NCBI GenBank assembly: GCA_964035545.1
Contig: OZ037773.1
Span: 3,749,751-3,813,750 of the forward strand
Reading direction: 5' to 3'
Origin: Bugula neritina
Lineage: Eukaryota; Animalia; Bryozoa
Length of the DNA: 64,000 nt
Numbering within the stretch: position 1 is the stretch's first letter; each line of letters begins with the position of its first letter. The notes under the pieces were generated by a model. The model made no database searches. It was not told the DNA's origin and saw only the letters and a list, made by a program, of their open reading frames with translations. Of the stretch, positions 1 to 43,200 are shown piece by piece. A program made the translations under genes and the position numbers.

Positions 1-1594
1 GAGCTCTGCTGGGAAGGGTGCTGCAACTCTACCACCCCATCCTTCTAATGTGGCTTGTGGGTTCTCTTCTCAAGATACTGGATTCCTACCAGTTGGTTTC
101 TACGCTTCTCCGATTCACCAAATCAGCAACTCTCAAGGCTCAGCTGTTACTAACTCTCACACAGATGGTTTTATGACCAACCACCTTGCTACTGCTGTCC
201 ACTCCCACACGAATGGTGTCATGACCAACCACTTTACTCCTGGTGTCAACTCCTATACGAATGATGTCATGACCAACCACCTTGCTACTGGTGTCAACTC
301 CTATACGAATGATGTCATGACCAACCACTTTACTCCTGGTGTCAACTCACACACGGATGGTGTTGCTGCTGCTACATCTCATCATGTAGCTCATACCAAA
401 GCAGAGAGCAACCAAGCTCCATATTCCAATCATACTCCATTAATGTCAAATCAACGGAGTCTTTGTTCGTTAGACATTGCATCTGACCTGCACCCCTGGC
501 CTTCGTTCAGTGCCGTGAGTAGACAACAGACCACCAAGGTGTCTGGGGGAGATAATTCGAGTCTGAATCTGAGCGAAGAAGTAAGTTAAATAATGCAAAT
601 GTATGTTAAACAGTGCAGCTGTAAGTTAACCGGTGAAGCTGTAAGTTAAATAGTGCAGGTGTGAGTTTAACAGTACCTTTGTGAGTTTCAGTAAAGTACA
701 TACAGTTGGTGCATACTCTGATAGGTTAGTACTCTGTATATGAATATATGAAAGCCTTAAAGTATTTAAGATAAAGTTTTACAGTAAGTTATAATCAATT
801 CACTAGGTTCATATTGTTACCTACAAACTATACTGTTACAACGTGATACTTGGTTTTACTTCCAACTCTGTATCTTTTGTTTTAGCTGAATGATAAACTT
901 TCTTTTCGGGAACTGTTATCTTCAGACAAGGTTTGTTTTAATCAATTTAAATCTTTGTGTTTTTATTCAAGGAGTTAATACTACTTTGATGTAGAGTCCA
1001 TTTTTACATTTTGCATCCTGGTTCATTTTTTTCCAATGAAAATGTGTGCCACTCCTTGGTCATAATTCAGGTATTTTTAGTTTACTTTTATCTACAACTC
1101 TTAGTAACATATAATATCAATAATTTTGTATAATATATAATATAATATAATGTATGGCATACTATATAATATATAAGGGTATATTATATAATGCATATTC
1201 ATTATCATCAGAACCATAAAATATGTATTTATCCAGGGTTATTCTCTCTTGTTTTAGAATTTAGATAGTGTGATGAGTACGGGCTCCAGCTTATCCACCC
1301 CGCCATCTAGTCTAGGTCAACCCAAAGAAAAATCTGTACGAGACGTGGTAAGTTGGCATCTGGGTGCCAGTTTGACAGTGTTTTATCTTATTACCAGAGC
1401 TAGTAATACTTTAGTGAGTAAGGTATAGTCACTAAATAACTGGTAGAGTCACTGGTAGTGGTAGTAGCAGCAGTAGTGGTGGTGCAGTAGTGGTAGTAGT
1501 AGAAGTAGTAGTAGTAGTAGTAGTAGTGGTAGTAGCAGCAGTAGTGGTAGTAGTAGTAGTAGTAGTAGTGGTAGTAGTGGTAGTAGTAGTAGTG

Positions 1595-1772: not shown

Positions 1773-4700
1773 CAGCAGTAGTAGTAGTAGTGGCGGTAGT
1801 GGCGGCAGTGGCAGTAGTAGTGATAGGGGTGGTGGTAGTAGAGGTGCTAGTTGTAGTTTAGTCACTGCAGTAAGGGTATTTGTAGTAGTGTAGTCCCTAG
1901 GACACAGGTGCTTGGGGTAGTATAGTCACTAGGGCGCAGGTACTTGTAATTTCCTCTGTATTTGCAGATTATGGGCCAATAATCTACAACTGGAAGGCAG
2001 TCTCTCTATATCCCAGAACCATGGCTATGCTTGCCATCTCTTTGAATCTGATAACAGCGTGGAATATCAGTTAACTCTTATTGTCACAACACAACCTTAC
2101 ACATTATTTTATATTTATTATGCCGCTTGTTATTTTTCTTCTCTTTAACTACCTTTTACAGTCAGTATATTGCAATGTCTTGAGATACAATGTAATTGTG
2201 GAACCTTGTTTTTGCCGTTTTCCAACTATTCTTTATAATATGTTGTATATTGGCAGTATAGTTTTATTTGACTGTAAGAGTTATAAAAATTTGTCAGAAT
2301 TGTAAAGTTTATATTTCAATTCGAAAAAATTAATTTGCATTTTTTTTTTCATTTTGAAGTAATATGTCTGCTAGTTGTGGGTTTGAAGGTGACTGTTTGT
2401 CCGGTTCTTTATTCGCATCTCTTAAGGGAGTCAAAACTGTCAGAGATCCATCTTTCTGTACAAGAATATTTTCACCCCCTGATGTACTTTGGCTTTCCAT
2501 CTGGTTGCAGTTTTGGTGCTGTACATCTATGGGTTGAGGGTAAAAAACAGTGATTGAGATAATATTTTAGTTTTATGGATTTGCCTACTTCTTGCCTCAT
2601 TTAATTTTCCTGAGTTTTTTCAACATCTATTACTTTTCATTCCGATAATAATATGACCTGTTTCCACCTGTTGGTGTGCTATTGATAAGCATTTCAGACT
2701 GACTGTGGATAGTATTTGTCTGGCATTCTGACCATTGTACGAATAATAAAGCTTCTTTGCTTATATTCCAGCAATTTGATTGGTTGATGGTATGTCATCC
2801 AAGCTTTAAATCATCGATCAGAGGTGCAGGCGAAACAGCTCGATGTATCTTTATCGTGATGCTTGTTATTAGATTTAGACTTCACATTTCTGGGTTTGCC
2901 ACAGAAGATACGAGAATGTTCTGTTTCAGTACCAACGTTAGCATTTGATGAGATCGTATTTCCTGGCTAGTTGTTAACGTTTTCTACAAACTTCCATTTA
3001 CTCTAAATGCTTGTGTCTCGTTAGATTGGCTTTGGTTGATAAAGTAGCCGGGTTTCCTTGGTAGCTATAGCTTGAGATCTTTGATAGAATAAACATAGTC
3101 GAGTTTCTTCATAGTCGTCTCTCTGTCTTCTTTGGTTTGAGTGATAGTTTCATTGTATTAGCATGTCACAGTTTTTGTTCGGCTTGCCTCCCTCCGTTTT
3201 GAGAAGTTATAAAATGTCTATGTTAAGTCTGTGCTTCATATTAATGCAAACTTTCAACCTCAGATTCGAACCAATAGTTAGACTAGAGTCGCTTGCTGAT
3301 CCATAGCCAGCAGATGAAAAAGTGGATAACAGCGAAAGGTTTAAATATATAAGTTTCGAATATTCTTCGTGTTGCAAGTTTTGTCTGAGAAATGTATAAT
3401 TTCTCGATTTATTAAAATGAAAGCAGAAAACAGTTTACTATTCGAAGGGATGTTGATGCAAACAGGTTCTTCAAGTTGTCTGCCCTGGCAGTAGTGGGAT
3501 ATAATAATTTCAGAGTTAATATGACATTAGTAAGTCCTTGCATCCTTCAACTTTATTTTCATTATATGATGACTATTGTCAAAGGTTGAATATATTTTTT
3601 ATGAATGTCTACCAAATGTCTAAGGTGGACATTGTATTATGCTAATTTGTGCTTTTCCTACATAGTTGTGTTGTGAAATTAAACTCGTCAGCAGTCATGC
3701 AAAGATCATAATAAATAATATCTACAGAAACAATGCAGCAAAATTTTTCAATCTCTTCACTAGGTTTATAATGGTTTTACCTATTTTAGTTTTCCACGGT
3801 TGAGCTATGCATGTATCTTGTATTTTAATCAAGAAACTTGTTGCAGACACAACTTTGATACTTATTTAATTCATTCTTCAATATACGGATTTTCAGTTTT
3901 TGCTGTGCTGTCTTATTGTTGAATTGTTATGTGCACCTATCAAAAAACAGTTATGCTGATAGGCATAACTCAAAATTAAGTAAAGTTGTTCTCAGTGGTA
4001 TGAAATATAGTGTGTAGGTGGACTTATAAATAACATGGATAATATGCAAATAGAGCAGAGCTGTGAATACATAAAAAATACAAGTTGAAGGGACTTGGGT
4101 TGTCAAAGCAAGTGATCAACCTAGAATTGTAAAGCACAACCAGACCGAAGCCCTAATCCGAATAGGAGCTAGAGCTAAAGCTAACAAAGTTTGGTTGGGA
4201 CACCAAGTCCTGAGCTTCGTCGAAGATTATTGGTCAATAATTGAAGATAATAATTACCAAAATTTATTGGTTAATTAATATTTCGTAAATCTATTTTAAT
4301 ATTAATTTTTCTGGTAGTTTTTGTTGGTTTTTATATGATAGCTGGCATTACCAGCAGAAAAATAACAAAATTCAATTCTGAGTATCCAGAACGAATCGCA
4401 CTTAGTGTCACGCGAGTAGGCCTAATAATATTACTACCCGTAGCTAACGTCATGCTGTAGACATTAAGTACAAGTAAACATTGTTTAACAAAATATCGGT
4501 GTGTTAAATAATTTGTTTTATTACGGTTTGCGCTAAAATATTTTTCTAATTAAGCGATAATGTTATAAAAAAAAATAACTTTTAAAATTAAATTTACAAA
4601 AACCATTCTGTACGTCATCAAGTATACAAAGTAAACTAAACTAAAAGTGTAATACAAGGGAGATTAATCCTAAATCTCATTTGTACAGAATTTTGAGTCC

Positions 4701-7700
4701 TCCGTATATTTGTGTAAAAAATAATTTTGAAACATTTAGGAGTTGTCTTCTTTAAAAATTATTCGCAATCAATAATTCTTTCTGTTATTGACAGAATTCG
4801 TAGCGGAATTACATCTCTATCAGCTCATAACATCTACATACAAAGGGTCAAAGTTTACTACAAACTCGATCACTGAAAAAAACTGAAGATTTTTAGCTCG
4901 AAAACTAATAATAGGCGATTGTGCAGGTTTGTGCGGGTTTGTGCGGGCCTCGAAATCGATTTTTTAGTTTTTTAGGTCTTAGAATCAGGGGAAATTATCA
5001 TAATTATAACTAAACTTTATTCCATTTCTGAATTTAATGATACAATTACTTGATACTGATACTCACTTGATAGTAATAATAATAGTAATGCTGATGACAT
5101 TTATATTCATAGTTTTAAATTTAATCAAAGTACTTCAGAATAAATAGAATTAAGTAACCATTGAGGCGCAGTTTCAGTTTGAGTTAGTCAGTTACTGTTA
5201 GTGTTAGTGTTACGCTTACTGTTACTTTTAGTTTTAGTGTTATTCTTATTGTTAGTGTTACTCATACTGTTAGTGTTACACTTGCAGTTAGCGTTACAGT
5301 CACACTTAGACTTAGAGTTAGTCTTACTCTTAAGCCTTAGTCTTACAGTTACTCATAGTCATAGTCATACTGATGGTCATGGTGATACTCATACTGGTTA
5401 CATCAGTCTCAGACTTGCTCTTGGTGATAGTTTCCATTACTCATTAGTCATTAGTCTTTATGGTTGAGTTATTACTTATTAGTTACAAATATTAGTATTA
5501 CTTATTACTATAAGATTAGCCTTAGGTCTATAGCTATAAGTTAAATTTATAGTAATAACTAATACTAATACTAACACTGCAGATAAGCTCTTCCATCTGA
5601 TGTAAATGTTAATACATAGCAGCCAGTAACCTATTTATGTAACAGTAATAGGCTAATAGTTAAATACTAATAGTAATAGTAATACTGATAGGCAATAGCT
5701 ATTGCATATACTTCATATTATAGTTTTTCATTATAATTTTATTGTAAAACTAAATCTTAATCTATTACTATTACTATAAAATTAAACCTAAAGTTCTATA
5801 AGTATAACTATTATTATTAGTTTTATACTTAGTCTTATAGTTATACTAATGCTTACTCTTAATATTTTTGTCAAATTCAATGACTATTACTATTAGTATT
5901 ACTGTTAGTATTACTTTTAGACATTTCGATTTAGTATTTGGTATCACTTTTGCTATCGCTTTTACTATTATTCGTACTAATAGTATTATTAATTGTTTTT
6001 TATTTATTTTAATTTTATAAATACAATTAGTAATATTTATCCATTACTATTAATTATTCATTATGAATATAATAGCATTATATCATTGCAATATAACCAT
6101 TAATGATCTTTTTAGTTGATCTTTATTATGTCTGAACCAAAGCCACCCTCAGGAGCAAAACCAGCATCTTATAACCGGTCACTAACCAAACCAGTTCAAG
6201 CGACAGGTGAAGGAGAGGGAAACTCCACACTTGAGAATCTGAGTCAGCTGAAGTCTTCTGTTGGGTAAAAAATCTGCTTAAATCTTTGAAAACATTTATC
6301 TTTTTGTTTTTTTTCAAGCTGGAGTTAATAATTTTTAATGGCCAAAAGCATTTATTCATCCACAAAAACTAAGAATTCAGTTTTTTGATGTTATACAGCA
6401 CTACATTTAGCCTTGTTTTTTTCTGACTATCAGCTGTTGAAAAAGCATTATCTATTTTAGTGACTGGTTTGTTTTGTTAGGTTCAAATCTCGTGAGCATG
6501 GTGGAGTGCACATTGGTACATTTAAGTGCGTGGTGAGTATGTACGCATATTTTCAGTACTTTGCTTTTTACAATGAGTACATGAGTACTATATAGAAGTA
6601 ACTACCTGTATATGCTCGCTTACTAATCAGTCTGCTGTTACAGGCCCGCAATGTGCCAGAGGAGTACCTCTCTTCTCAATGCTTGAAATGGCAAGTGGCT
6701 TTCTGTGATCTAAAAAAGTCAATTAGCGAGCATGACTTGTTTTCTGTAGAGAACTCTTGCCTCTTCAGTGTTTCGTTTGATCCTCAGACAAAGACGTAAG
6801 ATTTGTTTTAATAATGTATAACTAACTGGTTTTTCATGTAAATATTATTCATTGCATCTTAGCCCATACATAAACGCCTGGAGTTATTTTTTTAGATTAT
6901 GCATTAAATAGAAAGTGCAACTCTATCACGTTGAGTAAGTAAACTTTAGTTCCCATTTCCATCCCCTTTAGATTGTTTTATTGGTACTAACTATGTTTTA
7001 TGTTTAAATATTAATGTTTGGGTGGTAACACTTCTACTAGTCTTACTATTGTGTGGGCTCTTTTGGATATATCTGTTGTCTGAAAATATCTGGTGTTTCT
7101 ATCAGAATTGGAATGAGGTCTTCTTTCCTGGTAGATAATAGTCATAGATAGTAGAGCTGCGTGATATAGAGGAACTTTATTATCTAATAGTGCAAATAAA
7201 GTGCTAGCTTAATACAGTAATCTGGAAAAGGATCTTGCGTTTAACATTGCCCATGGATCATGTAGAAACATTATTCATTTAGTATAATAAAATATGACCA
7301 AGCATGTAAACAGCTATTGCTAATTAATAGCTTTGTCTAACTACCATATTAACAATAGATTATAAAACTGCAGCATGCTAATATTAGATGAGTATAATAT
7401 TGGATTGAGTAGAAGAATTTGTGTTAGTAAGTTGTCTTACCTATCCCACATCCTATCACTCAAACTCAACTCCTCTTCTGTTATTCAGTTGTGGCTGTTG
7501 CTAGTTATTGAGATTTGTGATATTTTTTTATTAAGTTATTTCATATTTTTTTATATTCATTTCTTTTCATTTTAATGTAAGAATTTGACTAAACTTTCCT
7601 GATATTGTATAAATGAATTAGAACTCACTCATCCAAGTTTATAGTCGCTATCCCTGTGAGAAAACTCATGATGTAATTTTTTTTTAAAATCAGGCTAAGG

Positions 7701-10700
7701 ACTTATTCAGATATGGCACAGGAACAATGATGACTGGATGCTCTTCCTAACATCTCCAATGGCCTTTACTGGGTTCAAACCCATGACTCCGCGTTTACTA
7801 AGCCAGCGCTCTAACTCCTAGACCACAGCTGCTCCTTATTTATTATTGAAATTAGAACTGATTCGGTCTATGCCAATGCCTGGGTCAGATTAAATATTGA
7901 TTCAACATTATTTTAAACATGCTTCTTTCGACATTGTACGAAGGCTGTTATTGCAGGTTGGAAGTGAAAGTGAAACTGGGTATGTGTGGCTCAACGGACC
8001 CTGAAAAGATAGAAGAGCGGAGGAGAAAGCACAAACTTCTTCATGGTAACTCTTAGCATTAAAGGTTTACTTTTAGTGTGAAGTATTTTCTTAACTTTTC
8101 AGGCAATCTTTTTTATGAGCTCTGGACTTGAAGATGTAAACATATTTTCACTTAAAATCCTTTCACTTAAGGATACAAACTATTTAATAGTTTTTCCAAT
8201 TTTACACCTCTACCCTCAGTATGTTGCACGCAACCCTTGTGTTGGCTATTTCTATTTGCTATTTAGTACTTTAGTGTCACACATCTTTAGGGTTCTTATC
8301 ATTATTAATATGTGCATAGTTTTCAGTTCAAGGATTGTTTACTTTGTTCACAAGTATTTCCAGTCTTACAAGTTTGGTTTCTTTCTATAAGGCTTTGGTG
8401 AAGTTGAAGAGCATTATGGGGTAGGAGATGGTCATGTCGTTGTGCCGTTTGTAAGGCTTATCAACATACACACCAAGAAGGACATCTGCCGTGTACTCTA
8501 CCTGCCACCTATTTATGACTCCAGTAAGTAGTCTTTTGCTTTTTTGTTTCCTCTAAGTTTCATCCCCTCGGCTTTAGAGAGAATCTAATGTTTCCGTCAG
8601 AAGACTCCTATTTCATCATAAGTCTCTGAAACTAGTCATTTGCAGTGTTTAACATTTTTACATTTCGGCAAGTTTAAGCCATAAATTCACCACTGTTGGG
8701 ACAAGTTTCAAGGTCACTCATGATATCGTGATGAACTATTAATATTATGCGCACCAATGGTATCGATAGCATTTGTATTCAATATGTTTTAAGGTGTTAT
8801 AATAAATATTATTCGGGGGAGGAAACTTGCATATATCTACGATCTTCAATATGTTGAAAAGTGTTGTAGTGTGTTTTACCTTTGTATATTTCCTGTAAGT
8901 ATGATATTTCGTGCTGCCGTTTATACCATAATTATAATATGCATGTTGACAGTTTGGAAGAATATTCATTATTTTTCATTAGTCTGTTGGTTGTTGCAGA
9001 TGTATATGTTACTCCTATTGTGAAGGGCTGTCAGGCTGAGGAAGAGAGCTCTACTCTAGTTTTTCATCTCAAGACGTCAGCCAAGACCAGTGAGTTGGGA
9101 AATCAATTCTTTCATTTCCATAAGTAGACGTAGATAAAAGCTGTTCAAATATAGACTGGGCACCTGTTTTTTCTTTACTCTCTGGAAGACAGGCTGTGTT
9201 TTAGCCACGCTGTGTTTTGTAGTTGAATGGGTTGTGCTGAGCAATGAGTTGAAAGAGTTGGAACGGATTAAGATTCCCTCAAACAAATTTTTGGATAAGA
9301 AAGTAGAGGTTAGCTATAATTCCGAGGCCCTTCGAGGTTGCACTGATGTCTATGCTTCTCTTATGACCGTGAATGAACTGAGGAGTGAACCAGCCACAAA
9401 ACTCTGGTTCAACGGCCAAAGACTTCAGAAGCCAGGTACTGCGATATCTGCCACATTCATCAATATTATTTATTTATTTATTGTTATTATTTGTGTTAAA
9501 TCAAACTGATTATAAGTATTATTTTTATTTATTTCTGAGTATGTTGAAAAACGTAATATACTGATTGTTTGTTACTAGACAATGCCGCTCCTGTGACACC
9601 GGCTGTCCCACAGCAGGTCTCTCACACAACTGTAAGTCTTCTACTTGTCATATTCAAGTGTTAACTTAATATATTTCAATTGTTAATCAACTGCTCTATA
9701 CAGCATATTGTTTGTTGGAACAAGTGGCTATGGTTGTAATATAAGTAGTTATGGTTGTAATATAAGTGACTGTGGTTGTAATATAGGTAGCTAAAGTTGT
9801 AATACAAATGGCTATGGTTGTAATATAAGTGACTGTGGTTGTAATATAAGTAGCTATAGTAGTAATATGAGTTGCTATGCACTAATGTATTTTTTCTCGT
9901 TTTCATAACTGTTGACATTTGTTTTGATGCTGAAAATTTAGTGTTGCTACAACTCTGCCCAATCATGAAGGGGTATTGTCCAATTACATGGGGGGATATG
10001 TCTAGTTAGTAGTTTGTATTTGGAACTGGGTTTGTTAAACGATCCTTGAGATCATCTGGTGTGTCTGTTCCAGGCTGTCAGCACGCACCCCGTTGAAGTA
10101 GATGAGGTGGAAGTAGATGTTGAAGAAGATGACCTTGAAGAAGGTGACCTTGAAGCAGATGGCACCAGAACAAATGTTATGGCTGTTGATTTGGAAGATG
10201 TTCAGGTTAGTTGTGACGTAGTTGACCAATGCTTCACTGTGTCAGTTATAGATGCTTTGTAGAGCATATGAAATACATTGAAGTTTTATGCAACTATTTA
10301 TCCTGTATACTATTTTTCACCTTGATATTAATAGGATTCATGTATTACTGGTGATGGTGTGGTTACACATGAAGTCCACCCAAACCAAGGTACAGCCTTC
10401 CAACTATACTATCCTATGTTATTCTTGTTTTATGATTATGGAAATAGTATTTCCATGTAGTATTGCCAGCCTTGAGTGGTAATCAAATAATACAATAAAA
10501 CCCCAGTTTACATGGTCACACAGCTTTCAAAGCTCTCTCTAAGTAACTGTGTGGGAGAATAGAAGTACCACTCTCATACTAAGGTTGTTTTATGGTTAAA
10601 CAAATATTTATATTTTCATCAAAGTTTGTTGAGAAATCTAGAATTTTATATACCTAGTAATGAGTGTTGAAATTTTCTTGTTGCTTTTTTCTGTCTACAC

Positions 10701-18837: not shown

Positions 18838-21816
18838 CATCATCATCATCATCATTAGCTGTCCTTCGTGTCCGAAGATGACTTCCGGTGAATCATGGTC
18901 CTCCATTTACATCTGTCTTTGCTGAGAGATTGCCAGCTACCAATAGGGATCTTCAGGTCTTTTAGATTGCGTTTAACGGTATCTTTGAATCTCAGTCGCG
19001 GCCTGCCAACACCACGGGTGCCTTCTTTCAGTTGTGAATAGAGAATTTGTTTAGGTAATCTAGAGTTATCCATTCGATGCACATGACCAGCCCATCTCAG
19101 GTTTTTTTGAATGAGTAGTTCATACATGCTGGGTAGATTTGCCTGTGCTAGAGTCTCCTCATTCGAGATGAAATCCCACCACTTCACGTTCAAGATCTGG
19201 CGTAGATGTCTCATCATATAGGTGTTGAATTTGTGAGCGGCTATCCTGTATACAGGCCAGGCCTCCGCTCCATAGAGCAGAGAGGACAGGACAATGGCTC
19301 TGTACACTGTACACTTGGTCTTGAATGACAGATCCTTATTGTACCACACTTTGGTCTTTAGTCTGCCGAATGAGATTGAAGCATTGGACATCCTTGTATG
19401 AATCTCTTCATCCATCTTGTTGTTGCACATCACTGTAGACCCAAGATATTTAAACTTATTGACGTTGGCAAGGTCTTCATTATCTATGCAGATACTGTCA
19501 CCACTGTCATGGGCTCCAGGTGCCGGTTGGTAGAGCGTTTCCGTTTTCTTGATATTGATCTTCAGACCAAAAGCTTTGGAAGCTCTGGCGAATCTGTCGA
19601 CTAATTCCTGTGCATTGCCATGGCTGTGTGCAACGAAGGCAGTGTCGTCAGCAAACATGAGTTCTCTAACCAATACTTTCTGTGTTATTGTTGTTGACTT
19701 GTATTGGTTCACATTGAACAGATCAGCTCCAGGTCTACTTTGAATCCAGACGCCTTTATCACAGTTTTCAAATGCGTGCTGTAGAACGGCCGATAAGAAA
19801 ATAGAGAATAGCGTTGGAGCCAACACATATCCTTGTTTCACACCATTGTTGACCTGGAACGACTCATATAACTCCTCCTTCAGCTTGACTGAGGCCTTCA
19901 TGCCAGTATGGAGAGCGCTGATAAGATTGGTGAAGTGACTGGGAAAACCGAGTTTCTGTAAGATCTTCCACAGGGTCGCCCGATCAACAGTATCGAACGC
20001 TTTGGTGAAGTCAATGAAGACCATGTACAGGGGCATATTTTGCTCGATGCATTTTTCCTGTATCTGCTTCAGTGCAAATATCATGTCTGCTGTTCCCCTT
20101 CCACTACGGAATCCACACTGAGTTTCGGGTAGGAAGTTTTCTGCATATGATGTCAGTCTATTTAGAAGGACACGAGCAAAAATTTTACCGGGAATTGAGA
20201 GCAGGGAGATACCTCTGTAGTTACCGCACAGCTTCCGATCACCCTTTTTGAAGATGGTTATAAGTTGGGCATCTTTCCAATCTTTAGGGACTACAGCAGT
20301 TTTCCATGCCTCCTTTATTATCTCATGGAGAGTACTTATTAGTTTGGGCCCTCCCCTTTTGATAACCTCAGGGTGAATACCATCAGAGCCAGGTGATTTC
20401 CCTTCACTTAGCATCGAAGTTGCCTTGATGATCTCTTCAATATCTGGGCAATCGTCCATCCAGTCCTGAATGGGAGCTTGTCTCAGGTTCTCAATGATGT
20501 TGTCATCAATATCTGGAGTCTCGTTTAGTAGCTTGCTGAAATGCTCTGTCCATCTAGCTAGAAGATCTTGTTTTTCTGTCAGGAGTGTTGAGCTGTCACT
20601 GGCCAGGAGCTGGTCAGGATGACTCACTCTTGGACCCCAAACAGTTTTCGTGCTTTGGTAAAAGCCTTTCATGTCGTTAGTGTCAGCAAACCGTTGCAGT
20701 TCAGCAGCTTTTGCCAACCACCAGTCGTTCTTGAGCTCCCTGCATCTTCCTGTGAGTTTTCTGCCAGCCATTCTAAGCTTTGACTTGTTCGAGCGAGTAT
20801 TCCTGGTTAACATGTCTGCTCTGGCCTTGTTTCTCTTCTGGATGAGTTCTTGAAGCTCATCATTATTCTCGTCAAACCAGTCCTTATGCTTCCTGCTGAC
20901 AGTGCCGAGGTGCACTTTTGACTCTGCATAAACTATCTCTTTGAATGCTCTCCACTTATTCTCTACGCCCTCTGGAGCAGAGTTCAGTTTCCCAGCAAGG
21001 GACTTTTCCAGTTCTTGTCTTACTTCCTCATTCTTAAGTCGAGAAACGTCCAGCTTCTGGCAAGGTGTTCTCCCTTTCTTCATTTTTCTCCTCACTCTGA
21101 GCTTAGCTTTTGACCTGATCATGATGTGGTCAGTACTGCAATTCGCCCCTCTCATCGCCCTTGTGTCCAGAATGTCTGGTAGATCACGTTGTCGTGTGAT
21201 AACAAAGTCGATGAGATGCCAGTTCTTGCTTCTCGGGTGCATCCAAGAAAACTTGTGAGCTGGTTTATGCTTGAAGAAGGTGTTGGTAATGCACAGTTGA
21301 TGTTCACTACAGACTGAGATCAGAAGTTCACCATTGGAGTTCAGGTTTCCGCAGCCATACTTGCCTATCACACCGGGCCAGGTTGAGTGATCTTGTCCAA
21401 CCCTAGCATTGAAGTCCCCCATGAGTAAGATCTTATCGGCTGCTGGGACTGATCTTAGAGCCTGATTCAGTTGGTCATAGAATCTGTTGATGTTTTCTTG
21501 GCTGTTTGTCATCGTGGGAGCATAGACAGCTATCACAGTGCACCGTCGCTCATCAGACAGAGGAACCCTGAGTGACATCAGTCTGTCGCTTATAGCCTTT
21601 GGCTCTTCGATTAGTCTCGAAACAAGTTCGTTCCTGATAGCAAGAGCCACGCCTGACTCACTGCGCTCAGATGCAGTTTTGCCACTCCAATAAATGGTGT
21701 GGCCTGACTCTTCACGAATGTTACCGGTATCTTTGAATCTGATTTCACTCAGTGCTGCAATGTCGATGCCATACTTCTGTAGTTCAGATGAAATGATTGC
21801 ACTTCTTCTCTCAGGT
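18838..21816 (-). mobile_element. RTE-clade (BovB-like) LINE, 5'-truncated, nested in the DNA transposon
   Basis: (TGA)n tail directly after the stop codon; CATGAT direct repeat at 18832-18837 and 21817-21822 (TSD); single EN-RT ORF. Confidence 0.93.
18855..21815 (-). CDS. APE endonuclease-reverse transcriptase ORF of the RTE LINE (no start codon, N-terminus truncated)
   Basis: Motifs DIAALSE, VYAPT, GDFNARVG, HLIDFVI, STDH, NYRGISLLS, QCGFR, FIDFTKAFD, GVKQG, LMFADD, FKYLGS, RWAGHV. The frame stays open upstream of the listed ORF (PERRSAIISSELQKYGIDIAALSE..). Confidence 0.95.
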   Translation of the reverse strand, partial: PERRSAIISSELQKYGIDIAALSEIRFKDTGNIREESGHTIYWSGKTASERSESGVALAIRNELVSRLIEEPKAISDRLMSLRVPLSDERRCTVIAVYAPTMTNSQENINRFYDQLNQALRSVPAADKILLMGDFNARVGQDHSTWPGVIGKYGCGNLNSNGELLISVCSEHQLCITNTFFKHKPAHKFSWMHPRSKNWHLIDFVITRQRDLPDILDTRAMRGANCSTDHIMIRSKAKLRVRRKMKKGRTPCQKLDVSRLKNEEVRQELEKSLAGKLNSAPEGVENKWRAFKEIVYAESKVHLGTVSRKHKDWFDENNDELQELIQKRNKARADMLTRNTRSNKSKLRMAGRKLTGRCRELKNDWWLAKAAELQRFADTNDMKGFYQSTKTVWGPRVSHPDQLLASDSSTLLTEKQDLLARWTEHFSKLLNETPDIDDNIIENLRQAPIQDWMDDCPDIEEIIKATSMLSEGKSPGSDGIHPEVIKRGGPKLISTLHEIIKEAWKTAVVPKDWKDAQLITIFKKGDRKLCGNYRGISLLSIPGKIFARVLLNRLTSYAENFLPETQCGFRSGRGTADMIFALKQIQEKCIEQNMPLYMVFIDFTKAFDTVDRATLWKILQKLGFPSHFTNLISALHTGMKASVKLKEELYESFQVNNGVKQGYVLAPTLFSIFLSAVLQHAFENCDKGVWIQSRPGADLFNVNQYKSTTITQKVLVRELMFADDTAFVAHSHGNAQELVDRFARASKAFGLKINIKKTETLYQPAPGAHDSGDSICIDNEDLANVNKFKYLGSTVMCNNKMDEEIHTRMSNASISFGRLKTKVWYNKDLSFKTKCTVYRAIVLSSLLYGAEAWPVYRIAAHKFNTYMMRHLRQILNVKWWDFISNEETLAQANLPSMYELLIQKNLRWAGHVHRMDNSRLPKQILYSQLKEGTRGVGRPRLRFKDTVKRNLKDLKIPIGSWQSLSKDRCKWRTMIHRKSSSDTKDS

Positions 21817-22113: not shown

Positions 22114-23356
22114 CTACACTTCATCGGTTACCAACGGTGGCTGCAGATTACAGAGAGCACAACAGACTACCATTATCTTATCTAAAAGAGGTGCCAACAG
22201 TAAGCTTACACCCCCAGGACTATTTGAAATATTAAATTCCTTTATCCGTTTTATTGCTCTTTCAACGTGGAATCTAAGGTTAGCAATCAACTTAGTTTGC
22301 AGTAACTGCGCTCTAGTCATTTGAGAATGGCCTCTCTTCTCAGGTGGCATGGCCAACTTGGCTCCAGCTCCTATTAGCTCTTCTTCAATAATAAAGCCTT
22401 TATCTGCCATGACCACATCACCTGGGTTTATGAGACCCAAAAAGCCAGAATCATTAACTATGCACTTGTCTGAGGCTCTACCTCCCATTCCAGGTAAAAG
22501 GAAGCATATAGTGCCTCTGGGTGTGATTGCAACAAGGTATTTGATTGTATTTGATTTTTTATATTCACTCCACGTCAAGGCTTGTGCCAACTTCGACTGT
22601 AGCTTGCATATAAATATTTCTGTGCAATCAATAATGCACCGAATGTTGGGATACTGACTTTGAAAATTGAGAGGAGTGTTCAATTTCTCTCTAGGGGGAA
22701 AAATAATGAGATTTTTTAATTCTGTTGCTAGAATGGTTAATGTATCTTTGAAGATTTTTCTTGCTAGCATTCTAGAAATATAAAAAAGGTCAGCAGGCAT
22801 TTGAAACTGCAGACCTTGACGCAGCTTCATCAAAGCCAACAAAAGCTCATCTTGTCTTGTTAACTTTTTTCTGAGAGTAAGACACCTCATCTTTGGGCAT
22901 ATAAATCTATATAAAAGAATAAAAAATAAATTAACAGCTGGAAATTATATCAGTGTATGTTCAACATTTATTTAGTTACTCAGTTTATATTCATTTAGCT
23001 TAATCTGTGTCTAATAATTATAAAAATGGAATAAAAACTGTTATAGCCTCAAATAATTGTGCTAACTATAATCATTCCTTTATAATATTTTATGTTTAAA
23101 ATATTTCATAAGTGTTGCTATTTATTTTAGACACACAGCAGTAACTTTAATGCCACAGTTGCCTGTTGAGCCTTGATGCATAAAATTTTCAATTTTTGAG
23201 ATGGGTAAACATATTTTTAACACCTTAAACTTACAATATTTATATTTAATGATGATTTAATTTAATATATTATATTTTACTTAATTTTGTTTATTTTTAG
23301 TGCAGTTAATTACTGTATGAAACTATATAGTAGGGTGAGACTTTTTTAAATAAAAA

Positions 23357-23408
<52 letters not shown>

Positions 23409-24100
23409 AATGTGTGTGTGTTTTTAATAGTACGGTAATAAACTTTAAACTTTTACCTCGCTAAAGAAAAATATAGAGATCGTGTAGGTATTCCAGTGTA
23501 AAACTTGGTTCTTTCATCTGTTGTGGTAAATGTTTTGAAAACTTTAATTTTCCTAATAGCTGCCTTTTGTTTATACTTGGAAAATCCTGAGCTTTTTCTT
23601 ATAACTTTTGGTCCAATATTTAAACGCCTAGGACTCTTTTTTGCATTAGCTAGCAAAGTTTCTTCTTGCTCAGTTACCTCTAATGAAGTTTGACTACAAG
23701 GCTGGCTGTAAGATGAATTCTGTTGCTTTACATTTGTTGAATATATTTTCTGTTCTTTTCTTTTTCCAGCTGTTTTGTCAAAACCACTGTTTTCTGTGCC
23801 TCTTGAACTATAAGTTTTGGTGCATTTGTATCCCAAGTGAAGGGTTGGGTTTAGATTTCGCTTAGTTGGCTGACCATCTTTAAAATGTAAGGAGCAAACT
23901 CTAGAATGCTGTTTTGGAGTCCATAAATTTCCTAATTCATCCTTCCGATTTATTAAAACACACCAGTCGTGACGCTGTTGCTCATTTTTTCGTGGAAACG
24001 TATAGAGAGTGAAAAGATTCAATTGTGCAGGGTTGCTCTTTCGAAACTTTTGAAGTTTATAATCTCCATTATGACAGTTTTTAACTGCGCAGATTCTCAT
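22114..24100 (-). CDS. Two-exon THAP-HTH-DDE (DDE_Tnp_4/Harbinger-like) transposase, about 478 aa
   Basis: Exon 1 24100-23457 (THAP: CAVKNC..FP..W..RVCSLHF..PTL). A phase-2 GT-AG intron follows. Exon 2 22906-22114 (LLLALMKLRQGL HTH; IIDCTE, MADKGF, HVERAI catalytic D-D-E). The spliced length is 1437 nt, in frame. Confidence 0.9.
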
Positions 24101-25329
24101 GCCAATCTGTAAAATGCCAAACAAAATATTCAGTATTGGATTAGATTCCTACCAGAACAAAACCTGATATAACTAAATGTGTATTACAAAAGGTAGTAAG
24201 ATTTTTTTTCCCCAACATAAATGCTTGCATGCTGTAAAGTTGAGGAATATATCACAGATCTTTTGGAATATAAGTTGTGAACACAGTTTTGTGCTAAAGC
24301 CAGTAATTAATGTAGCCAATATTTGTGACTTTGAGTAAGTAAAAGTTGAGGAAATTTGATATAGTAGCCATTGTTGACTGAAACCTTCACCTGTTTTCAA
24401 AAAGTTGTGCATTTAATAAGAACAGCATTTGAATAATTGCTCACAAACATCTCAGCCCTTCACAGTAAACTGATTTAAATAAATCTATTTTTAGCCAGAT
24501 CTAGTTGGAAATGCGAAAAGTGAGAGACTAACAAATTTTTATCTATTACTAAAATACATAGACTGCATATGCTCAATAAATTTCTGTATTTTGCTACAGA
24601 ACTATCCAAATGTAGACAGAAATCACATGTTCAGCGACTGACTTTAGTTAATTATTGTTGTAATAGTTACTCACCTTTTGTGTAGCTACTATAATCCACT
24701 AAATCTTGTTATGAGATGAGTGTTAGTACCAGCATGCCAGAGTATGGTACAAACTAATGACGTACGCTGGGGAAACTATATTTTCTAAATTAGTTTCTGT
24801 TGTAAGTTTCTAACAGAAGGTATTTGTATTATAATAGCAAGCAAAACATAAGTGATATCCTTAGCAGATTTTACATTTACAGCATGAATGTTATTTCATC
24901 AACTCTGGTGTGATAATACCACAAAGTACCACATAAAAGTTTCAATTTGCTATTTATTCCTAACCCATCTAACATAAATATAGGCCATTGGTTGAGCTGG
25001 ATTTATGTAAATGATTGCAAGACACCCACAGTATTATTCACTCATGCTGTTGCAACAACGAATTTCTCATTAAAATTCCTGGTTCCCATTAGGTAGAATA
25101 TGTCAGCAAGCTCTGTGATGTGATTCATTTGCTTTCTGTTTACTGTTGGATTTAGGGTTATACCATTATTGTTAGGGTTACTGTCCTTATTTCCCTACCT
25201 CTGCTGGCTATGTAGCTACCTTTGGGCTATGCAGTGAATGTATACCATAGTTTGATACTCATCAGCTGCAGTAGTCTTAGAGATACAGCAAAACGCAGCT
25301 CAGTTTGAAAACTCCTCACAACTTTATCA

Positions 25330-40250: not shown

Positions 40251-43200
40251 TCAGAAGTCTGTTTCCACAGGTGGGCCACGCTGGTCCCAGTCTTCTGTCA
40301 CCTCACTCATTGCATCAATGTCAGTTTCTGGGGGCAAGCGCCCTTCTCCAAATCTACCTGGGGGAAACCTCTCGTACTGCTCGTTTACACTGTTCTGATG
40401 ATGGTACACCCTCGGCGAGGAGACATCCGAGTCATACCCAGTGTTAATATCTCTGACAAGAGGGGACGGGTGGTAGGGGTGCCGGTAGCCAGCCTGAGGT
40501 GCGGGTGAAGTTCTCGGTCTATATAGCGGAGTTCTGTCAGCCTGATCCTCTGAGTACGTGGAGTCAAGGTCAGTGTCGAGGGGCTTCTTCTCGTCTGAGT
40601 ATTGACGGTGGTGGTCGTAGGGCCGGTAGCTGAGTGGCGGCTTACTCACACTGTAGTCTGTGTCGAATGAGTCCACTGACTTGGTGTCCATGGTGCTCAG
40701 GCTATCCAGCTTCCCCTCTCTAGGGTAGTACTGCGAGACGGGGCGCTGACGGGGCTGCGGCAGCGCGTCCCCTCTAGTGGCGGTGTTGTAGCTGGGCGGC
40801 AACTGCTCCGTGCTGTATTTTGGTGGAATGGGAAAGTTTGGCACTGATCCAGAGCGACTGGACGCAGACGGCTGCCGCGTGGTGGGCGGAGCCGGGCGAC
40901 TCGGTCGCTTTTGACTGTAAAGCTGCCTCCTCTTCAGCTCCGCTAGATCCATGGCAGGTTGGTAAGCCTGTGGCTCTGGTTCTGACGGTGGGGGTGGTCT
41001 CTGTAGCCGCCCCGTGTTGATGTAAGCGTGGTCATCGGCGTCACCGCTAGCTGTGACACCCCGAGAGGCTGGCTGGACGGCGCCAGGGCGGAAGTCCTCA
41101 TTAGTTGGCTGCCGGGGGGAGGAGAGGGTGTGTTTGGGGGAGGAGTGGTCAGTGCTGTAACCTTCATTACTGTAATCCACCCTGACCGGCGCCGTTGGTC
41201 TGTATCTGCTGTAGGAGACACCCGGCTCGACTGTAGACTGAGCACCCCGTGCTGCTATTACGGGTGGGGCTTGTGACGGCCCTGCCTCATGGCGTACTGT
41301 TTGAGAGTTTTCCTGATTCGTCACAGGATCGTAAGCTCTCATTGGACGGGAGATGTCGCTGAGGTCATCTCTGGAGCCTCTTCTTGAACTGTCCACAGAT
41401 CCAGCGTAACCTAGCAACAGACAAATATTAAAAATATGCTGTTTGTAAACTGGCAACTTGCCATATTTCCAAGCTAATGATTTTTATAATCTTGCAACAA
41501 AAGAATTACCACTCTACATCAAGCAGTGTTATCAGAACGAAGGAGGTTGTAGGAAAGAATAACATAAATTAACATGCCACATAACCCACATGGTTGATAG
41601 CCTATGGTCTAGGTAAACATGCAGAAGCGAGAGTAATCACAGTCTATAAACAAGTAAAAACTAAATGAAGGGTTTGCAGCTTGCCTAGAAGAGCAGCCAA
41701 ACTACACAATCACGAAGCTGTATAATGTTGGAGATCCTGTGATATCTAGCCGAGAGTATATAATTGCAGTGAATATACATTAGATTAGTACAGAGACAAT
41801 GGAAAACTAGCCGGTGAATCAACCACAGAGACGAAAGTGTAACAGTTAAAAGGAGTCTAGGATTTTTAGCCAAAGAGACCAGAAACAAGAATCACAGGTG
41901 GTGCAGCTGTAACTAATACCTTTTGGTGTTTTTGCAACAGACTTTACTGAAGCAGTAAGGGGGATATTTTCAGCCCCCACCTCACTATCAGTATCATCTG
42001 TAGAACCTGCCAATCAGAATGTAGGAACTTAAGCTAAAATCTGACAAAGTTGCGAGATTAGCAAATACTTGGGCCAGATGTACCTGATAGGAGGCTCAGA
42101 GTTTTGGGAAGTTGTCTTCCCAACATAGAAAATTAGAAGGAAATTATTTGTTGTGCAAATAATCAATGGAGAAGAAATAAAGCAACAACATTTGGCCACG
42201 GACTTCATTATCATAAGATTTTGAGCTGATAACCCAAAATGTGTTGGAAGAAAAATTAAACTTAATGTTTTTGGCGGCCAGTCTTGTATTCATCAACTCA
42301 CTGCAGAAGGATGCAGATGTAAACAAATGACGAGAGACGCACAGACAGACAACATAGCCACTTACCCGTGCTGGTGTAGCCGTTCTTCTGAGTCATTACA
42401 GTTTCGCTGTCGTCTGCATCAAAGTCAGCGTCCGTCTCGCCGACAGTGAAGTCTGTGAGAGCGACGGAATGAGTCATATCTCGCGTTGTGTTGCGACCTC
42501 TTGCCATTGGCCGATTAGCCAAGGCATCTGGAGAAAAGAGGAAGTAAATGTTTACTAAACTATTTCCGACACTATAGTAAGAAGATTACCTTCAAAATAT
42601 CTGTTAAGTTTCATCAAATTTTTAGAAGTTAGAAATCAAAATATTAGGAAAAGAGAGAAGGCAGTAGCATGTGCATTAGATTCAAATTTTTATCATTTAA
42701 AGATACCATTTATAATTATTTATCAAATTTTTTTCACCCTCGATTTAAAACAAAGCAAACAGAGCAGAACTAATTTCTTACTTCGAGATCCGTAGAGAGA
42801 GGAGGCAAGGTTGGTCTGGCTGCCCTGAGTGAGGGCGCCGTTGTTTATGGCGTATTTGTTGCTTCTGATGGATGAGCGAAGAGAGGCGCGACGCTCAAAC
42901 CGCTGCTCCTTGCGCACCTTAGCCTTGCAGAACCACATGATGACGAAGATGGCTGCGAGGAGCAGCAGGAACCCCCCAACTCCGAGCATCACCCACAGCA
43001 CGAGTAGGTCAGGGTCTGCTGGCACTGCGCCAATTTGATCTGAAACACAAATTTGTATTATTATATAAACACTGAGTATTGTATCTGTTTTGAATGATAC
43101 ATATTGCAACAATTATTGTCCTGCAGACGGTTCTATGACACACTATGACACTGCTTGGTGATACTTTCATGACACTTTGGTGATGTCACAGAGGGCATCT

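Follow-up and report, generated by a model that had tools for sequence, protein, structure and literature searches.

A compact nine-exon gene beside two divergent Rel copies

The 64,000-nt stretch of Bugula neritina DNA analyzed here (the window; contig C9:3749751-3813750, AT-rich eukaryotic DNA of a 216-Mb assembly) carries on its plus strand a compact gene, referred to below as copy C, that most likely arose by local duplication from a Rel-class gene and has diverged beyond the reach of ordinary sequence search. Its nine coding exons span window positions 6128-10262 and encode a product of 368 aa (40.8 kDa, pI 5.2; Table 1). Exons 1-8 have GT-AG borders and are spliced in phase into 306 stop-free codons, and exon 9 (10074-10262), which follows a strong acceptor, contributes 62 further codons and the stop. 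The ATG at 6128 stands in a good context (A at -3). The initial annotation of this stretch, made from the sequence alone, had proposed that seven short exons between 3264 and 9435 join in phase into a cryptic, extremely divergent Rel/NF-kB-like protein. The hidden in-phase exons are there, spliced by GT-AG, and all the motifs quoted from them (FKSREHGG, HDL, LGM, LPPIYDS, KGCQAEEES, TLVFHL, TSAKT, IEWV, VYASL, RSEP, and LWF) lie within exons 1-8. The range had to be redrawn, as no coding exon that links to copy C was found within 3264-6127 and the gene continues beyond 9435, as far as 10262. The residues ER, which had been read before FKS, are V-G in the spliced product, the R having come from reading through the acceptor AG/G (here and below, a slash marks an exon border).

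The product appears to have a two-part Rel homology layout, with an N-terminal domain encoded by exons 2-5 and an IPT-like domain encoded by exons 6-7, followed by a linker and an acidic tail. In the tail, 20 of the 62 residues are Asp or Glu (pI 4.1).

Copy C is the third member of a local cluster. Copy A (C9:3730167-3736584, minus strand) lies about 20 kb upstream, and copy B (plus strand, C9:3743069-3750336 and on) lies between the two, with its RHD exons at C9:3743292-3748144 and a large C-terminal exon that runs into the window. Copy C starts on the same strand, about 5.5 kb beyond the point where that exon ends (window 586). The search for paralogues that the initial annotation had recommended placed copy C beside two recognizable, though divergent, Rel copies. 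Elsewhere in the genome, a canonical Rel gene (C9:4685745-4690412) matches both PF00554 and PF16179 with 38-53 bits per exon, an NF-kB-like gene on contig C1 (16852808-16856100) was found by the same two profiles at 36-41 bits, and the genome profile scans also gave an NFAT-like match on C1. Copy A is detected by PF00554/PF16179 at 19-34 bits and has the degenerate recognition loop FAFDPLTS. Detectability by Pfam declines from canonical Rel through copies A and B to copy C.

Table 1. Features of copy C and its immediate surroundings (window coordinates)
Feature	Position	Strand	Length (nt)	Phases	Rel counterpart	Content	Remark
Copy B, end of large C-terminal exon	1-586	+				Single open frame from C9:3749362 into the window	Context
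TATA-like box, putative core promoter	6016-6023	+				About 110 nt 5' of the ATG	Pattern scan; weak, AT-rich region
Exon 1, coding part	6128-6264	+				ATG, 45 codons + 2 nt, end LENLSQLKSSV + GG/gtaaaa	
Exon 2	6481-6532	+	52		X1	FKSREHGGVHIGTFKCV	Phase-2 intron directly before Phe
Exon 3	6644-6795	+	152	0 to 2	X2	VAFCD...SEHDLFSVEN (HxL motif)	
Exon 4	7957-8045	+	89	2 to 1	X3	KLGM (NLGI position), basic EERRRKHK	
Exon 5	8392-8523	+	132	1 to 1	X4	VRLIN...LYLPPIYDS	
Exon 6	9000-9089	+	90	1 to 1	X5	EEESSTLVFHLKTSAKT	First third of IPT-like domain
Exon 7	9223-9435	+	213	1 to 1	X6	Ends KLWFNGQRLQKP + G/gt	Remaining IPT-like domain
Exon 8	9579-9631	+	53			Pro/Gln/Thr-rich linker	
Exon 9, terminal coding	10074-10262	+				Acidic tail, then VSVIDAL + stop	
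AATAAA, candidate polyadenylation signal	10494-10499	+				232 nt past the stop	Pattern match only

Three further observations concern this locus. A candidate upstream exon at 3418-3466 was rejected, having no in-frame join to copy C. Intron 3 of copy C contains, at 7620-7840, a tRNA-like SINE copy of a repeat family that is very abundant in the genome; the summed contig depth of the DNA run reaches about 650,000 there against about 147 beside it, and hundreds of variant contigs end at this place. Finally, exon 1 includes the kB-like decamer GGGAAACTCC (6217-6226), the sole GGGRNNYYCC match within the window's first 12 kb and probably a chance occurrence.

Copy C has the exon-intron architecture of Rel genes

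The evidence for the assignment is mainly structural. The exon borders of copy C were fixed before the structures of the paralogues were examined, and the comparison was made manually on five genes of one genome. The intron phases of copy C are 2,0,2,1,1,1,1. All seven are common to canonical Rel and copy B, and the six that follow X1 are also common to copy A and the NF-kB-like gene on C1; copies A and B both keep the Rel exon phases. The initial annotation had pointed to phase-1 introns after PIYDS and TSAKT as a feature in common with NF-kB genes, and these two introns lie exactly where they do in the Rel/NF-kB genes of this genome. Exon 5 stops one nt into the codon following PIYDS, just as the corresponding exons stop one nt past PIVDK, PIHNST, or PVHDQ, and the next intron falls one nt past SAKT in copy C and one nt past KLPK, TRK, or VTK in the others. 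The comparison of intron positions that the annotation had advised went further than these two sites, with the other five phases and the exon lengths matching too. The intron that comes one nt after the Pro following the last strand occupies the same residue position in copy C and in the Rel genes, X6 ends in phase 1 soon after the F.Y/W.F strand in every copy, and motifs keep the same register with the exon ends throughout (e.g., PIYDS/ vs PIVDK/).

At the 5' end of the comparison, a phase-2 intron right before Phe (FRYECEG / FKSREHGG) is found in copy C, canonical Rel, and copy B only; the C1 gene has no intron before FRY. X1 is 88 nt long in canonical Rel and copy B and starts there at the codon position and in the phase seen in copy C, in which 12 codons are deleted after FKSREHGG relative to this 88-nt exon. 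The upstream exon of copy B also ends in GG/gt, and in copy C the tail of exon 1 is similar to the strand found ahead of RFRY, (I/L)E(I/N)L(E/S)Q(P/L).

Exon sizes tell the same story. For X1-X6 they are 52/152/89/132/90/213 nt in copy C, 88/155/92/147/99/231 nt in canonical Rel, and 88/182/95/138/96/207 nt in copy B; for X2-X6 they are 170/104/132/99/219 nt in copy A, and the C1 gene has no X1, exons of 170, 80, 177, and 108 nt for X2-X5, and a split X6. For X2-X6, copy C differs from the nearest paralogue by 0-15 nt per exon. By a rough estimate from typical phase frequencies and the spread of exon lengths, the chance that seven phases and five exon sizes coincide would be well below 1e-5. 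Measured by the informal criterion of the architecture common to four bona fide members, copy C agrees in 7 of 7 phases.

Copy C is a protein-coding gene under moderate constraint

The exons of copy C have a GC content of 46% together (44-58% for each exon), compared with 32% for its introns. Other versions of the locus were reached through two protein fragments corresponding to exon 7, which led to the contigs L021 (8.1 kb) and L020 (1.1 kb), both from the JGI metagenome sample 3300003318. L021 aligns through exons and introns of copy C with about 91% identity (about 9% diverged) and retains the ATG, an uninterrupted frame, the stop position, and every one of the 16 splice dinucleotides; in its exon 9 the acceptor is identical, 12 nt are deleted in frame, and the stop falls at the same codon. 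All four exon indels between L021 and the window (9, 18, 6, and 12 nt) are multiples of three, compared with 5 of 32 intron indels (16%), and indel density in the introns is four times that in the exons. When the 79 observed substitutions were placed at random in a neutral simulation, the frame remained stop-free in 7.7% of trials. The ratio dN/dS against L021 is 0.69 overall, with 1.29 for exon 1, 0.46 for exons 2-5, and 0.62 for exons 6-7. L020 represents a third version, about 10% from both the window and L021, in which exons 6-8 are open and their splice sites intact. These data show that copy C is a protein-coding gene under moderate constraint.

As a separate observation, the sample 3300003318, a host-associated metagenome, carries two versions of the locus, each about 10% from the window and from the other, which suggests either that several closely related lineages of the host are present or that its haplotypes are very divergent.

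Similarity to Rel proteins at the level of sequence and fold

Residual similarity to Rel proteins was measured by aligning each exon globally with its counterpart, with the query shuffled within exons as the null, and averaging over the four paralogues. In this exon-anchored alignment copy C gave z 2.45, a value reached by 15 of 1000 shuffles (p 0.015), and the L021 orthologue gave z 3.12, reached by 1 of 1000 (p 0.001); copy B, which is clearly Rel and served as the positive control, gave z 10.3. The signal is confined to X1-X4. The best single exon was X4 against canonical Rel (z 3.26). For the X2+X3 region, copy B is the nearest paralogue (local z 2.66); it has in common with copy C the derived motifs AFC and EN in X2 and EER.R in X3. 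An alignment of hydrophobic patterns over the IPT part, specified beforehand, gave a weak z of 1.94. These faint signals fit the structural argument but would be insufficient by themselves.

A number of results weigh against this reading of the locus. The profile match that the initial annotation had proposed as a check did not appear in any of the comparisons made: Pfam hmmscan of six single exons of copy C, at E up to 10, returned 0 families; six-frame genome scans placed PF00554 at 7 places and PF16179 at 6, none of them at the copy C locus; phmmer of exons 5 and 7 against PDB sequences was blank; a local HMM built from the four paralogues scored copy C at -1.0 bits, no better than 5000 shuffles; and hhalign profile-profile alignment gave a probability of 0.2%, out of register. 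Full-length Smith-Waterman alignment of copy C stayed at z below 1, and AlphaFold2 prediction from exon 7 alone with the two orthologous fragments was unusable (pLDDT 42). In the anchored alignment itself, the IPT-like exons X5-X6 have no residue-level signal (z about 0), and the anchored tests, of which several were tried, are only weakly significant. Phase-1 symmetric exons, moreover, are common among Ig-like domains generally. Nucleotide identity to L021 is almost equal in exons and introns (91.4% vs 90.6%), so the constraint on copy C is modest. Lastly, among the public runs holding the stretch, no RNA run is listed; the one DNA run (n=1) has contigs identical over the exons and may be the assembly's own source.

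Copy B, although clearly Rel, is itself blank in Pfam for X2, X4, and X5 (three of the four exons scanned), and its X6 reaches 16.5 bits. The Pfam blank on copy C is uninformative for this reason, and such silence is to be expected for anything more diverged than copy B.

Among 1.84 billion representative proteins, exon 7 had two matches, both of them the exon-7 fragments mentioned above (82-87% identical), and no full-length or distant relative. An ESM Atlas feature search with exon 7 gave no usable match, tblastn of the spliced copy C against the 36-kb cluster region found only itself, and exons 7 and 3 found only themselves in their own genome, besides one match with E 0.9 on contig C2.

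Taken together, Rel descent of copy C is likely, with support mainly from gene structure and also from the neighbours in the cluster, and weak support from sequence. The initial proposal of a fast-evolving Rel paralogue holds to this extent as regards origin, and it falls short in the profile match.

Alternative explanations

We weighed three other accounts of the locus. According to the first, copy C is a decaying duplicate, a relic of a Rel copy that makes no useful protein, its frame being open by chance or its constraint only recently lost. A relic would accommodate the overall dN/dS and the high value of exon 1, the near equality of exon and intron identity, the loss of the DNA-contact motif together with the failure of all sequence profiles, and the lack of a listed RNA run. 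It is at odds with the retention of frame and splice sites across three lineages about 10% apart, with the in-frame character of every exon indel as compared with the intron indels, and with the kept position of the stop codon, the sharp GC step at the exons, and the dN/dS of the N-terminal domain. We estimate from those numbers a combined neutral chance of about 1e-4 or less, and we regard a relic as unlikely.

A still less likely account is that of an unrelated, lineage-specific orphan gene, in which the Rel-like phases, sizes, and location are coincidental. It draws on the lack of unanchored similarity to any Rel protein, on the two same-exon fragments being the only relatives in the protein collection searched, and on the fact that 1-1 phases are common. 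Against these stand the joint match of seven phases and five exon sizes, with the rough estimate given above, the equal distances of the motifs from the exon ends, the non-random anchored similarity, and the position of the gene immediately next to two Rel paralogues on the same contig.

The least probable account, that copy C is not a separate gene and its exons are spliced to the copy B transcript, forming a 3' cassette that is used alternatively or another Rel-like region of the one protein, has in its favour the shared strand, the distance of about 5.5 kb past the large exon with further possible copy B exons between, an AG preceding an open in-frame stretch at 6116 that runs into the ATG, and a transcription start that is undefined by RNA, but it is opposed by the gene's own ATG, in good context and kept in L021, by the TATA-like box 110 nt upstream, by the AT-rich and repeat-rich nature of the intergenic stretch, and by exon 1, which corresponds to the N-terminal strand exon of copy B and so points to a complete duplicated unit.

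Recognition loop and possible mode of action

In complexes of RelA and p50 with DNA, Rel DNA recognition is defined by the loop R-x-x-R-x-R-x-x-C-E (RFRYxCEG). The spliced loop of copy C reads G-F-K-S-R-E-H-G-G, compared with R-FRYECEGR. The initial annotation had noted a loop without Tyr and Cys; what is missing is the whole Arg/Tyr/Cys/Glu set. In addition, HPH is reduced to EHD, and no basic nuclear-localization cluster follows the IPT-like domain, RRRKHK being located within exon 4. Copy C lacks the loop as well as the PF00554 and PF16179 matches by which Rel homology proteins are recognized. Because the recognition-loop residues are lost, canonical kB-site recognition has presumably been lost as well, given what is known of Rel-DNA complexes.

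The absence of ankyrin repeats, also part of the initial annotation, was borne out: the frame ends at 10262 after the acidic exon, the stop is conserved in L021, and the downstream open frames are blank in Pfam.

Given that the N-terminal domain is the most constrained part of the protein (dN/dS 0.46), it presumably still does something. We propose that copy C may be a regulator without canonical binding to kB sites. It would most likely act via partners, perhaps by pairing with other members of the Rel family, and such pairing might bring in or block its acidic, activation-type tail. The acidic C-terminal exon would fit an activator-type tail at least as well as a decoy; a pure decoy role is possible, though not favoured given that the acidic exon is conserved. 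A moderate constraint of this kind (dN/dS 0.46-0.69) would be in keeping with a regulator that evolves fast and is restricted to its lineage, possibly one that functions in immunity.

A bolder reading, which we offer tentatively and consider rather doubtful, is that copies A, B, and C form a lineage-specific, fast-evolving set of Rel-derived genes progressively giving up kB recognition, of which copy C would be the extreme, a partner-only Rel-fold protein with an acidic tail. In that case, copy C might pair with the canonical Rel or the NF-kB protein and retarget, boost, or poison it, and might evolve under an arms-race-like pressure.

Other features of the window

On the 3' side of the large copy B exon, a long trinucleotide repeat at 1449-1890 encodes poly-Ser, poly-Val, or poly-Leu depending on the frame; it may be part of the copy B C-terminus or non-coding. 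Farther along, the minus strand carries an intact LINE open frame of 931 aa with endonuclease and reverse transcriptase (18858-21650) and, beside it, a DDE_Tnp_4/HTH_Tnp_4 transposase frame (22117-22890, minus strand) and a THAP-domain frame (23456-24124, minus strand) that make up a Harbinger/PIF-like set. A Pro/Ser/Tyr-rich frame of 401 aa at 40254-41456 (minus strand) lies in a GC-rich island and has no Pfam match; further minus-strand exons extend to about 57000, and the frame has the look of an exon encoding the cytoplasmic tail of a large membrane protein.

Discussion

Animal immunity and development depend on Rel/NF-kB proteins as central switches, and surveys rely on profile searches to count them. 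Copy C, to which the architecture and the neighbouring copies quite probably assign a Rel-class origin, looks like a conserved coding gene of Rel descent, one that was missed by every profile tried and revealed only by its intron positions, exon sizes, and neighbours. If its fold and expression are confirmed, it would mean that invertebrate Rel repertoires can be undercounted, and it would provide a natural Rel scaffold that has been stripped of its DNA-reading loop and given an acidic tail, useful for probing those Rel roles that go beyond binding to kB sites. Should the partner-only reading be true, copy C would be a family member identifiable by intron positions alone, and 'dark' Rel relatives of this sort may have been missed in other invertebrates. 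The graded series of canonical Rel, copy A, copy B, and copy C within one genome is also well suited to following the erosion of a transcription-factor domain once its gene has been duplicated.

Our literature searches turned up no paper dealing with Rel copies as divergent as these or with the positions of introns in Rel genes. According to the published account of Exalign (PMC2377436), as far as it concerns the principle, patterns of exon length and phase can expose relatedness where sequence comparison fails. The idea followed here is the same; the genes were compared manually and not by Exalign's method.

Among the genes of this genome, the members of the cluster and the C1 gene resemble copy C to different degrees. 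Copy A and the C1 gene have the phases 0>2, 2>1, 1>1, and 1>1 and a final phase 1, as copy C does, and copy A also has a degenerate recognition loop; unlike copy C, both are still detected by PF00554 and PF16179. Copy B comes closer, with the phase-2 intron before X1, a split Gly codon (GG/G) in place of the first Arg of RFRY, the AFC, EN, and EER.R motifs, and N-terminal-domain exons that are invisible to Pfam. Copy B differs in its partial loop KIRYLDK, its full 88-nt X1, its match to RHD_dimer, weak at 16.5 bits, and its C-terminal exon, which is long and rich in Ser/Thr/Asn.

With respect to the two classes of the family, the C-terminal ankyrin (IkB-like) region that characterizes the NF-kB class (p100/p105, Relish) is absent from copy C. 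Compared with the canonical Rel gene, a member of the Rel class (RelA/c-Rel/RelB, Dorsal/Dif), copy C has no Pfam or HMM similarity, a loop shorter by 12 residues, and a much shorter protein (368 aa). Nevertheless, the two have in common what appears to be the two-part layout, a C-terminal acidic region, the lack of ankyrin repeats, identical intron positions and phases, near-equal exon sizes, and the motif PI(Y/V)D(S/K) ending the same exon. Copy C most likely works like, and descends from, a Rel-class gene.

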